64,000 nt of DNA, from NCBI GenBank assembly GCA_021613535.1, contig CP075497.1:11470001-11534000 (forward strand), written 5' to 3'. The translations under genes were made by a program, and so were the position numbers. The notes beneath the pieces were generated by a model. The model did no database searches. It saw nothing but the letters and a program-made list of their open reading frames with translations, and had not been told where the DNA came from. The DNA is from Adineta vaga. Taxonomy: Eukaryota; Animalia; Rotifera. Below are positions 1 through 7,080 of this stretch, one piece after another (within the stretch, counting starts at the first letter, position 1; every line of letters starts with the position of its first letter).

Positions 1-991
<991 letters not shown>

Positions 992-1342
992 CTAGAAAAT
1001 ATCAAATATGATGCATATTTATATTTTCATGTTTGTTTTTTTTTATAGTATATTTTATTTCATACGAATAGAGACAGCAGAAAACGAATGAACAACCAAC
1101 ACGACACAAACAACATGATAAAGAAGAGAAAAACAAATTAGTTTGTTGTTGTTTTTTTTCGAATACAATCTCAAATATACGCATACACACACACACACAC
1201 ATGTACAAATGTGACAGTACCAAACAGAAAATGTCTTACAAGCACTAAAGGGAAATAATCATAGAGTATATGAACTATGTTCAATACATAAACAAAGAAA
1301 TAGAAGAAAACAAACACAGTCTTATTGGATTTTTCAAAAGAT

Positions 1343-3979
1343 TCATTTGCGTAAAAGCAAACATGATTTAAGAATTGTATCGATTAAATCTGGTTGTTTC
1401 GCTTTCAATTCAGTCCAACCCTAGAGAAAAACAAATCAAATATGTTTCTAATCTTCTATTAAATTCAAACTTACCGCTGTTTCCATAACGTTGCCTAAAT
1501 TATTCGCAATATAATCACATGTTGTTTGTTTTAACATTTCCGATTTCATATTATCACTCAACATAAGTAATTCACTAAAACATACGATCAAATATATTCA
1601 TCGAAAGATTATAGAGAAAATTCTTGCTTACCATGCATTATCAACACGAATAATATCTTTAAGATAATATTCAGCATAGGTTTTCAAATCCGGCATATCA
1701 TAATTAGCTGCAATTGTTAATAAATCAATAACAAGTGTATGAGAAATAGCAGCACCTGGTAAAGCTAATTTTTTAATTCCACCTGTGTAAACATATTCAA
1801 GAAAATATAGAATTGTTTTACGATCAATATCATTAATATCAATTGTTAAAAATGATGCATCATCAGTACCACCAACTTGTGTATCGGTTTCCATACTTTC
1901 ACTTGTTGTATTGGCAGCTGAAGCGGTTGCTCGTTTACCATGACGACTAAAATGAAAAAAAATCTATTTTGCTTTGTTTTCTCTTCTTGTAGATAGTTTT
2001 AGTTACGTTGGTTTAGCAGGTGGACTAACAGCTGCTGGATGAGCTGATGTTTCTTTTTCTTTAATCATTCGTGCAAGTACACTGGAACGAAGACCAAGTA
2101 TAAGTTTATGCACACTATATAATTCATTGCCACATCGTAGATACATATCACACATACGTTTTTCCAAGTAAGCTGTGTAGAATAATGTTGGCCAATATGT
2201 TGCTGGATCATCACTAATTGATGTTGATGTTGTTGAATTGGTTTTATTTGTATTTGTGCGCGGTAATGCAACCAATGGACGAGAAATGTATTTACGTTCA
2301 TCAAGGGATTGTCGTTCAAGAATTTTTATTTGACAATATAATCGAAGTTCATTTCCTGGAAAAAGTTGTTGTTGAGCTTGTAATAATGTTGAATGTTTAA
2401 TAAAATCACCAACACCCCAACGTTCACCTGGTGCTAGAACATGCGATGGTAATTGTTTTGTATTAACACGACGTCCACGTGCATCAATTAAGGAAAAACG
2501 AATAACAACACGAACACTTGGACCAAATGTATGTTCGAGAAAAACAGATAAAGATTCTTTAAATCGTTCAGTTTTACCACTTGGATAAAGAATAAGTGAC
2601 CATTGATGGGGTGGAATATCATTTTGTGTTGTTGTCGTTGTTGTTGTTGATGATGCTGCTTTATTTTCATTTGTATTTGCTCCATTAGTTAATTGTTCAT
2701 CATTATCATCACCAGTTTGATCTGGTGTTGATGTTTGTAAATTTGCTACATTACCTGGTCGTTGTTTATTGAATGTAAATTCACACGACTCAATAAAACT
2801 ATTATTCGGTGATTCATTAACTAATGTTGCAAATTTTTCAATTTTCCAACGTAATTTCATTTTCATGACCTTAGACACGACACGAGATGAACCTTCAAGT
2901 ACTTTCGACGTACTTGTTTTCATACTACGTTTCGCAATATCATCGATTGACATTAATTCGATACTAATGATTAAATGATCTTTCGAATCTTTATATAATT
3001 GTTCACATAAAGCTCGTGTCATTTTCATAATAACTAATTCATCAGTTATATTTCCACCACAATCATGAACAGTTTCAGTATGAAATATACGACCCTAGAA
3101 AATAAAACTATGGAAATTACTTTTTTCGAAATTAACTTATTTACTTGAGGATTTGAAAAATTAATCAATGCTCGAAAATACACTTGTAATTGACGTGATG
3201 ATGTATTCATCAATGATGATGCAATATGATTCGGATTATTTGAGCCACCATTGGCTGTTGTTGATGCATTGGATGGATGTTGAGATGCAACATGTGATGG
3301 ACATAAAGTTAAATAGAATTGTATTGATGAATCATCATCTGTTGTTGAAGCTCCACTAGTTGATGTTTGATTTTGTTGTTCTTTTGATAAACGTTGATGA
3401 CCTTTGGGATAAAGACGAAGTGTCCAAAATTCCTTTTGTAAATCATATGGAGGAAATTCTTCGCTTTGAATCATATCACCACATTCATACCTTTCAAAAA
3501 AGAAACATAAGAAAATCAATGAAATAAATACAATATGAATATCTTACATTTGTGGATAGAAATCTTCAACAGTCCATTCAAATCGAACATGTGAAACATT
3601 TTCAATTGTTGTACATAACATATCAGCTTCGTTCGTCGGAATAGCTTTGGCAGCAATACCTGTTGACGTATTTGATGACGATAATTTTGCATCTTGTTCA
3701 TCCTCATCCATACCTGTACCTTCTTCATTCATACCTTCAGCATTTCCTTGACCAGAAATATTCTCATGTCCACCAGCTTTACCAATGACTTGGTCAGAGA
3801 GACCTGTTGCTGCTTCGCAAACATCAGAAATTTGTCTTTGAGAACAAATACTATCCACACTAAAACAAAATCATCTATAGAATCTTTCATTATACTTCTC
3901 TTCTGTCTCACTTTTCGGATACAGCGGACATTTCTTCTGATTGTGCACCACCTGATCGTCGTAAATTTTTTCGTGACAT
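1343..3979 (-). CDS. SPOP-like protein with two MATH domains, a BTB domain and a BACK-like C-terminus
   Basis: MATH-like segments HVRFEWTVEDF...WTLRLYPKG and KLRWKIEKF...WSLILYPSG...SLSVFL...WGVGDFI. BTB: CDMYLRCGNELYSVHKLILGLRSSVLARM...FLEYVYTG...LLTIAANYDMPDLKTYAE. Last exon GWTELKAKQPDLI. ATG 3979, TGA 1345-1343. Confidence 0.85.
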
Positions 3980-4152
3980 TAAACTTCGATACAAAAAGAT
4001 TCAGTCAATTTTTAATCTAGAACAAACAAAGAACTGATATTTTTATTTTATAACCATAAACGAAAAAAAGATTCGAAGTATCGAATGAGATTCACATAAT
4101 GATTAGAGTATTCGCTTGGATAAATATTCATATTAAGACTCTCTAAACTCAT

Positions 4153-4757
4153 TTATAAATCGACTGGAAGAGCAAGTCGTCCCCAGATAATCATATAAAT
4201 GCATGTATAGACCATGTTAAACAAAGAACCCCATGCGATGTCTTGTAAAAGAATCGATAATGGATATCGTTCAGAAAATAATACACGTGTTGTTAAATTA
4301 TAAACACCGTAGACAACAAGTCTAGAATAGATAAGATAAAAGTTCATTATTATTCATTTCAAACAACTCCAATGAAATCACATTACCCATATAAAACACC
4401 AGCAACAAGTCCACTCAATGCACTCGCAGATAATGGAGTCCATGTTGGTCGATGTTGTTTAAGTTTATCGAAATAAGAAAATGCTAATGAAACAGCAATG
4501 AAATACCAGCCAATAGCTAAGACTAAAATTGAATAAAAAGAATTTTTTCTTGTCTTTATTTTTTAATATTGATATAACTAACCGACATATGTGATGACAC
4601 CAGCTACAATATCAAATTGTACCTTTTCTCCTTTTTGAATATTAACAACCACAGCTTCATAACGATCTTTTGCCAGAAAGATGTATACTAGATCGATAGC
4701 TATGTAGACAATAACTGCAATAATAGGCAGAATGATATTTGTAATTCGACGATTCAT
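4153..4757 (-). CDS. DUF2177-family small multipass membrane protein (159 aa, 3 exons)
   Basis: Exons 4757-4583, 4522-4387 and 4321-4153 join into an open 480-nt CDS. Motifs IAIDLVYI..Y..VVVNIQ and GLVVYGVYNLTT...YP...LQDIAWG are typical of the mainly prokaryotic/giant-virus DUF2177 family. Confidence 0.75.
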
Positions 4758-4937
4758 TGTTAGAGAAGACAAACGTCGAATCAATGTCAAAAAGAAAAAC
4801 AACAAACTATAAACAGAGGCTTTTGTTTGTGTCGAATGTTCTTTGTTCGAGAAATGACCAATCATTAAGAAAATGCTTGGCCTCCATTTTACATTTCAAT
4901 AGATGTCGCTCTCGTCAACTCGCGTGTAGAAAATCTA

Positions 4938-4945
4938 TTTCGCGG
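4938..4945. promoter_or_regulatory. E2F-like site (TTTCGCGG) in the divergent promoter between the DUF2177 gene and the OSR1/SPAK kinase
   Basis: Matches TTTSGCGS. A second CGCG core lies at 4921-4924. CGCG is uncommon in this AT-rich sequence. Confidence 0.4.
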
Positions 4946-4995
4946 GTGATTGTCATGTTTTTTTTTTCTTGAATAAATTTATTTGATTGAAAAAA

Positions 4996-7080
4996 ATGAA
5001 TGAAAATTCTGAACGACATTCATCAACTACAAATGTAAAACAATTAAAAGATGAATTAAATATTGAACGAAATGAATGGCCATCGAAACGAGAACAATAT
5101 ATCATTTGCGGAAAATTAGGTGAAGGAGCAACGGGTAATGTGAGTAGAATTGAAAGATAATTTGAATAGAAGAAATGGTTTCTATTTCAAGGTATTGTTC
5201 ATTGGGCAACATGTACTGGTTGTACAATAAGAAAGCGAGTAGCAATTAAACGAATTTCAATTAAGGAATCGATGTATATTGATATTGCTCGTGAAATTCA
5301 TGTGATGGCATCATGTTCACATGAAAATATTGTTCGATTTTGGACAAGTTTTGTGTATAAAACGGAATTATGGATTGTGATGGATTTATTAGATGGTGGA
5401 AGTATGAGACAGATTATTGAAAAACGAATTCGCGATAAAAACGATTGGTATCTCGGAATATTAGATGAACGTGAAATTGCAACTGTAATGCGTGAAACTT
5501 TGAAAGGTCTTGAGTATTTACGTAAATAATAATTTGAATATGGTTGAAATCTTTTCAAATAAGATCTTTATTTCATTAGATTCACAACAATATATTCATC
5601 GAGATATAAAAGCTGGAAATATCATGTGTAAAATTGATGGAAGTATTCAATTAGTTGATTTTGGTGTCAGTGCTTTTCTCATTGATTCATCAACACGTGA
5701 AAAAGCAATTGCACATACATTTGTTGGTACACCCTATTGGTAGATATAGATTCAAATCATTTATTTTAATAATAATAATCATTCAATTTAGGATTGCACC
5801 TGAAATGTTTTCATCGGTTGGTTATGATAATAAAGTTGATATTTGGGCATTAGGTATTGTTGGAATTGAATGTGCAACTGGACATCCACCTTATTATAAA
5901 AAATCAGCTCAAGATGTCTTTCGTATTGTATGTACAGATACGAAAGGACCAACACTTGAATCGAATGCTGAACGTGAAGGACAATATATAAAATATGGTA
6001 ATGAATTTCGTCAATTTCTTTTAATGATGTTAGAACCATCGGCAACAAAACGTTTCAACGCATCGAATTTATTACAAGCAGATTTTTTAATTAAATTTGG
6101 TCAAGAAAAAAAATTCGTTATTGATCATATGATATTAAAAATTTCATTTGATTGTATTGAACAACAAATTGATATCGATTTACAATCAGACGATTTAAAA
6201 GATCGAATACAAACAACAATTCGAGAACATGGATTACAAACAGAAAATACAATTTTAGATAATATTAGAAATTTCTTTCGGTAAAATTCATTTTCTTCTT
6301 CTTCTTTACTTTGGAATCATCGGTTCTCTTTTCAGACCCATATCACAAAAATTAACCCAGGTAAAGAATGTTGGTTAAGTTTTTCTTACTTTTAAACTTA
6401 ATTATATCGTTCTACAGAGTTTTTTTTTCTTTTTTTCTGCATCTATTGAGAAAATCTTCATCAGAATTAATCGTATTGCTAATCGATTTTCATGCTTATT
6501 CGAACAAAATTTACATTATTTCTCTTATAGTTAGTTGCGAACATATCTAATCTATTGTTTTGTATTTCAAAGGATATCGATCGAAAATTAGATGCAAATC
6601 TTGATTCCAAAACAGTTCTAAATCAAGAACCATCTATATCAATTAAATTGAAAATAAAAGAACCGGGTCGTTCGGCATTTTCATTAATTACATTTAAATA
6701 TCAACCAAATATTGATCATCCGATCAATGTTGCTCAAGAATTAGTAGCTGAAAATCATGTTTATGGACATGATTATATATTAGTTGCAGCAAATATCGAT
6801 AAAGTTCTTTCTCATAAGAATAAAATTCGATTTACATTACATAAAATCGATGGCAAAGGTTTACTATCAAAGATTTCTTTGTATCTTTTGTTTTTGTTCT
6901 ATTTTGATTTCAATAGAAAAAGAACCACCATCATATGCTGAAGTTTCACTTGAAGACACACCTTTAACTGAAACAACAACAACTAATGGTCTCCATTCCG
7001 TTGGTTCACTTCTCCACGAACCAAGTACCCATCAAATAATCAATCCAGATTCGAATAATATGCCCACAACTTTCTCTTAA
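4996..7080 (+). CDS. OXSR1: STE20-family kinase, OSR1/SPAK (fray)-like
   Basis: [59 protein letters not shown]-terminal CCT-like domain [20 protein letters not shown]...VAANIDKVL. Confidence 0.85.

Follow-up and report, generated by a model that had tools for sequence, protein, structure and literature searches.

The operons of the tunicates Ciona and Oikopleura and the SL1-type operons of nematodes join unrelated genes of one strand across gaps of near zero, with an unpaired splice acceptor tens of bases past the polyadenylation (poly(A)) signal of the preceding gene; they use a single class of spliced leader (SL), with none specific to operons, and the leader can form the whole 5′ untranslated region (UTR) of an mRNA. 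SL2-type operons of C. elegans have a region of ~100 nt between cleavage site and acceptor, a conserved element within this gap and downstream genes of a growth or germline type. In the chaetognath Paraspadella gotoi, a gnathiferan relative of rotifers, the definition of an operon required genes separated by <250 bp and an SL on a downstream gene, and no leader is specific to operons (PMC12460157). In Hydra, a horizontally transferred gene heads a native, SL-resolved tandem pair (PMC3273482). For rotifers SL trans-splicing has been reported and operons explicitly not (PMC7986045, 2021); the 2025 description of chaetognath operons places rotifers merely among the trans-splicing lineages (PMC12460157), and no report of operons in bdelloids was found in the searchable literature. 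Here we analyze a 64,000-nucleotide stretch of the genome of the bdelloid rotifer Adineta vaga (assembly GCA_021613535.1, contig CP075497.1, positions 11,470,001 to 11,534,000 of the forward strand; hereafter the window), in which the sequence read together with RNA joints shows three intron-bearing genes lying head to tail on the minus strand of positions 1-4800, in the order DUF2177-like > SPOP-like > MCM3. There is about an even chance that this locus is an SL-resolved operon of the tunicate or SL1 type, with SPOP-like and MCM3 as its two genes and DUF2177-like as a possible third member.

The locus shares each of the features listed above for tunicate and SL1-type operons except the near-zero gap, its own gaps being 43 and ~100 nt, and differs further in that its shared transcription is putative. 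Like SL2-type operons it has a ~100-nt region from cleavage to acceptor, a conserved gap element and a growth/germline-type downstream gene, MCM3, but it is served by one SL sequence, present in 42 copies as counted with the published SL as the only query. The chaetognath operons have different leaders and were defined with Iso-Seq and read-level SL calls, whereas our RNA evidence consists of assembled contigs. As in Hydra, a bacterial-type gene, DUF2177-like, stands at the head of the pair; its foreign origin is putative, however, and of the two proposed co-transcription links the one between it and SPOP-like is the weaker.

The gene models were searched exon by exon against Pfam and compared with RNA contigs assembled from four public runs of four studies (X2, X5, X21, and X23). 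All 14 predicted introns were recovered as CT..AC joints in the four RNA assemblies, and the three gene models are therefore real. The DUF2177-like membrane protein gene occupies 4757-4153 (exons 4757-4583, 4522-4387, and 4321-4153; ATG 4757-4755, stop TAA 4155-4153), with both introns present in all four assemblies. Its match to DUF2177 (PF09945) is confined to exon 3 (25.9 bits, with a cut-off of 26.9; E=1.2e-5), a score just under the gathering threshold, as would be expected of one third of a domain. The SPOP-like (MATH-BTB) gene spans 3979-1343 with 768 codons (exons 3979-3912, 3859-3548, 3490-3145, 3094-2007, 1946-1632, 1574-1475, and 1420-1343; ATG 3979-3977, stop TGA 1345-1343), and its six introns are RNA-confirmed. 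It encodes MATH_2 (9.8e-14), followed by BTB (1.5e-5 and 1.3e-4) and a weak BACK_BPM_SPOP match; the name denotes likeness of architecture only, since 768 amino acids is double the length of SPOP. The N-terminal exons of MCM3 (991-920, 857-745, 691-569, 513-427, 370-241, and 190-33; ATG 991-989) also have RNA-confirmed introns, and the gene continues beyond the window start. MCM_N and MCM_OB (3e-12) are found in the window, and the MCM (P-loop), MCM_lid, and WH_MCM3_C domains in the orthologous locus L017 of a relative. DUF2177-like and MCM3 are each present in one copy in the genome. Within SPOP-like, the joint of intron 3 (3091-3145) takes two forms, 3093/3144 (X5, X23) and 3091/3144 with intervening GC (X2, X21), probably an allelic difference beside the acceptor. 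Intron presence also differs by lineage, with the introns between exons 2 and 3, 3 and 4 or 4 and 5 of SPOP-like missing in some relatives' genomic contigs (L018, L026, L027, and L036/L037, compared with the window).

At the junction between SPOP-like and MCM3, the elements named in an earlier note on this sequence are in place: AATAAA at 1059-1054, followed by 60 nt devoid of GT, and an acceptor AG (993-992), part of TTTCTAG at 998-992, that directly abuts the MCM3 ATG. In X2 and X21 the SPOP-like RNA contigs extend to 1037, 17 nt beyond AATAAA; cleavage of the mRNA takes place in the A-run (1044-1036), 10-18 nt past this signal. On the other side, the exon-1 piece of MCM3 has 75 letters (919-993) in X2, X21, and X23 and ends at the AG before the ATG, with 4 further letters past 993 in the X2 contig that have no match in the genome. 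Between these two boundaries lies an intercistronic spacer of ~43 nt (1036-994), over which bin-wise depth arithmetic found no RNA in any of the four runs. Comparison with relatives, whose genomic contigs were gathered by a word search with SPOP-like exon 4, contig look-ups and one pattern scan, showed that the boundaries are far better preserved than the spacer. Across 10 lineages (alignment A1) the poly(A) signal block CTATTCGTATGAAATAAAA and the TTTCTAG/ATG block are 97-98% identical pairwise (97% for the former), the MCM3 acceptor itself is invariant, and the spacer is only 56% conserved; the distance between the two blocks varies from 52 to 71 nt. The freedom of the spacer from GT is specific to this genome and not common to the other 9 lineages. 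A TATA-like run at 1047-1036 was considered as an MCM3 promoter and ruled out because it is not conserved.

At the junction between DUF2177-like and SPOP-like, the AATAAA at 4047-4042 and the acceptor AG at 4018-4017 ahead of the SPOP-like ATG are likewise present as previously described, the AG as part of a TTCTAG element (4023-4017), and the TTnTAG/AT of the acceptor is invariant in 8 lineages. The X5 exon-1 piece of SPOP-like comprises 107 letters (3912-4018) and ends at this acceptor AG, followed by 2 unaligned letters, leaving a 5′ UTR of 4016-3980. In X21 and X23 the SPOP-like contigs end at 3981 rather than 4018; we infer that these ends, like contig ends at 4733 within the DUF2177-like gene, are graph breaks near heterozygous sites close to the ends of the RNA. 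The AATAAA is probably not the DUF2177-like poly(A) signal, being absent in the 7 other lineages, in which neither AATAAA nor ATTAAA occurs from the DUF2177-like stop to the acceptor, save one over the stop in L027. The probable signal is instead a TATAAA that overlaps the stop codon (4157-4152), where TATAAA or AATAAA is also found in 3 of the 7 other lineages (L017, L018, and L027). By bin-wise depth arithmetic the DUF2177-like contigs extend to ~4121 in X2, X21, and X23, ~31 nt past this TATAAA, and no RNA, including any contig, covers ~4019-4111. The 3′ end of the DUF2177-like mRNA thus appears to lie at ~4121, and the spacing of about 24 nt in the earlier note is revised to ~100 nt, measured from this end to position 4017 of the acceptor. 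Within this gap, 25-35 nt past the apparent cleavage site, lies a GU-rich tract with TGTG at 4096-4093, as does GAATCTCA at 4093-4086, a conserved motif. Its AATCTC portion is nearly invariant and, with TTnTAG/AT, represents the only constant part of the 8-lineage alignment of this junction (A2). The count of GAATCTCR in the window is at or below chance, indicating that this is not a general signal.

Knowledge of SL trans-splicing in bdelloids dates back to 2005, and the presence of SL RNA genes in this organism, as previously assumed, is borne out by the genome. The 100.8-Mb, six-piece assembly contains 42 copies of the leader that differ from the published 23-mer (PMC3795323, Table 1) at base 1 only, and every copy precedes a GTAAAT donor with an intron of ~80 nt. 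These SL RNA genes cluster on piece C5 (9884356-9925969 and 10912931-10934587; L001-L006), often as divergent pairs with leader starts ~154 nt apart. The 3′ part of the leader ends in ACCAAGAG, with AG as its last letters, so that an SL-joined RNA would align through the acceptor AG, as is seen. We infer that the non-genomic letters beyond both AGs belong to the SL. Both acceptors also proved to be unpaired, with SPOP-like and MCM3 contigs ceasing to match the genome there and no cis-splice joint connecting either acceptor to an upstream exon in the contigs of the four RNA runs.

If the acceptors were not trans-spliced, the mRNAs would have ordinary starts beside their ATGs, or would be cis-spliced to unseen exons, and the contig ends would be artefactual. 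This explanation could draw on the fact that the letters of the SL were not read directly, on the contig ends at 3981 (X21 and X23) and 4733, which show that artefacts are possible, and on the chance frequency of the bare acceptor motif, as YYTYTAGAT occurs 11 times in the window against 9.95 expected. It is nevertheless very improbable. In contigs of three studies the match to the genome breaks off at one and the same base, 993, non-genomic letters without a cis joint follow both AGs, and neither acceptor varies between lineages while the flanks drift; it is the position and conservation of the acceptors, not the motif itself, that exceed chance. The genome moreover contains the SL genes, and scanning ribosomes could not translate an MCM3 mRNA whose 5′ UTR measured 0-2 nt. 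A 5′ UTR this short is implausible for cap-dependent initiation without an added leader, which counts in favor of leader addition. With high confidence, the mRNA boundaries and their conservation are thus best explained by SL trans-splicing at 4017 and 992.

Whether the three genes are transcribed together is a separate question, and here the reading of a polycistronic unit in the earlier note is borne out in part. The SL genes, the conserved acceptors, the mRNA boundaries and the short gaps all speak for such a unit; the single promoter and single precursor at its core are putative, and no contig bridges a gap. Polymerase normally does not stop so close past a poly(A) site. The ~43 nt between SPOP-like cleavage and the MCM3 acceptor are taken up by signals for 3′-end formation (poly(A) downstream elements) and for the 3′ splice site (a region of branch site and pyrimidines, with the AG), and with polymerase running on through such a gap, a read-through RNA with a working acceptor should exist. 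The order kinase<>DUF2177-like>SPOP-like>MCM3 is retained in five relatives' contigs (L017, L018, L028, L031, and L037), SPOP-like>MCM3 additionally in L032-L036 (10 lineages with the pair in all) and DUF2177-like>SPOP-like additionally in L026 and L027. Such conserved gene order is weak evidence, since neighboring genes outside operons are also syntenic. L026 and L027 had been considered as spliced RNA contigs, which was ruled out; they are genomic and derive from lineages that lack some of the introns.

The age of the SPOP-like>MCM3 linkage is indicated by a diverged duplicate of SPOP-like (the B copy, an ohnolog), which in A. vaga lies on piece C3 with neither DUF2177-like nor MCM3 as neighbor. 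In the B loci of relatives, remnants of MCM3 are found directly behind the SPOP-like poly(A) signal: an exon-2-like segment with an internal stop (L019:10585-10698, E=2e-7), an exon 1 with its donor (L038:2980-3027) and a similar exon 1 (L025:5300-5360). These remnants, which have been lost from the C3 region of A. vaga, show that the linkage is older than the duplication.

Against shared transcription, the three genes may be separate units packed by a compact genome, with small promoters for SPOP-like and MCM3 in the upstream 3′ UTR or gap and with outrons, 5′ stretches removed by trans-splicing, replaced by the SL. We consider the chance of this to be somewhat short of even, and several observations weigh on its side and against an operon. 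The B copies retain a TAG/ATT acceptor 9-12 nt before the ATG, and the copy on C3 has a long upstream region of its own, lying ~3 kb from an opposite-strand receptor gene with no same-strand neighbor upstream. Trans-splicing of SPOP-like is thus independent of the upstream gene; an acceptor kept behind ~3 kb of empty DNA means that a position adjacent to the ATG is not operon-specific and that SPOP-like can be transcribed, with an outron, from a promoter of its own. Acceptors next to the ATG are in any case common in bdelloids, in which 50-65% of mRNAs are trans-spliced (PMC1925144). Promoters in this region can be tiny, as the kinase and DUF2177-like genes share a divergent region of 230 nt. 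The conserved GAATCTCA in the first gap could be a promoter or start element, and a promoter of MCM3 could be concealed in the conserved blocks of the SPOP-like 3′ UTR. Contig depth, although a poor measure, gives DUF2177-like:MCM3 ratios from ~0.3 to 7 between runs (~28-fold) and SPOP-like:MCM3 ratios of 0.9 to 2.3, a spread that counts against strict co-regulation of DUF2177-like. No RNA contig bridges either gap in the four assemblies, from which rare precursors tend to be dropped, and the leader itself was not read at either acceptor, where only 2 (X5) and 4 (X2) unaligned letters are available. Two scans of JGI metagenome contigs for SL-joined MCM3 starts returned none, yielding genomic copies only; the second provided six genomic contigs that were taken into the conservation comparison. 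Finally, a distant relative (L020-L023, 48% identity) has no MCM3 beside SPOP-like.

Other observations weigh against separate units. Just ~43 poorly conserved nt separate SPOP-like cleavage from the MCM3 acceptor, and a promoter would lie in a transcribed 3′ UTR and be overrun by polymerase. The motif GAATCTCA follows the GU-rich tract at a distance from cleavage that would be expected of a poly(A) downstream element. The SPOP-like 3′ UTR (1342-1037) contains strongly conserved blocks, such as ATTGAACATAGTTCATAT at 1285-1268, but two of its blocks survive in B copies with a dead MCM3, and those two must serve SPOP-like rather than MCM3. Long, near-invariant blocks (ATTGAACATAGTTCATAT and a block containing TGTACATGTGT) extend over 1060-1300 in the window and in L017, L018, L028, and L031-L036, the two shared with the diverged B copies being kept in L024, L025, and L038; this conservation points to post-transcriptional control elements. 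The same 3′ UTR carries a (GT)n microsatellite (1172-1211) that occurs in this genome only, where relatives have the conserved TGTGTTTGAGATTG, and that interrupted the RNA contigs in X23 and X5.

Taken link by link, co-transcription of SPOP-like and MCM3 is slightly favored, whereas that of DUF2177-like and SPOP-like is doubtful, with a chance clearly below even, because of the ~100-nt gap with its conserved motif, the varying depth ratios and the possible own promoter of the B copy. All data would be consistent with a hybrid arrangement, known from some C. elegans operons, in which an internal promoter acts in addition to read-through. It is a rather unlikely, more far-reaching possibility that bdelloids run true SL operons, in which the SPOP-like>MCM3 unit predated the genome duplication and later gained the bacterial-type DUF2177-like gene between its promoter and first acceptor.

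At the start of the array, the X5 contig of DUF2177-like extends to 4779, and there is no AG from 4800 to the ATG, with RNA depth zero at 4801-5400 in all four runs. The gene probably has an ordinary transcription start upstream of its own ATG, and 4758-4795 is its probable 5′ UTR and start region. The X5 contig, of low depth, has 10 extra 5′ letters at 4779 (ACGACACGTA in mRNA sense) that are neither genomic nor spliced leader, and the DUF2177-like contigs of the other three runs span just 4121-4733, stopping inside the coding sequence. The ~230 nt at 4758-4990 separate the DUF2177-like ATG from that of a divergent, plus-strand OSR1/STE20-type kinase gene, a layout that is kept in relatives.

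In the SL-resolved operon that we propose, transcription of DUF2177-like would start ~25-40 nt 5′ of its ATG, within the 230-nt divergent promoter region common to the OSR1-type kinase gene, and its mRNA would be cleaved and polyadenylated near 4121. DUF2177-like may be the third, upstream member, joined to SPOP-like across the ~100-nt gap. The 23-nt SL joined at 4017/4016 would provide the 5′ end of the SPOP-like mRNA, with polyadenylation at ~1037-1044, and polymerase reading through past this poly(A) site would supply at least part of the MCM3 precursor. Joining of the SL at 992/991 would then generate the 5′ end of MCM3, for which the leader would be the entire 5′ UTR.

The locus contributes mRNA boundaries that have been measured and a linkage that can be dated, SPOP-like>MCM3 having been in place before the ohnologs split. 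If shared transcription is confirmed, Rotifera would join the short list of animal phyla with polycistronic transcription, which would affect how genes are annotated and promoters assigned in bdelloid genomes and bear on whether operons arise wherever SL trans-splicing exists.

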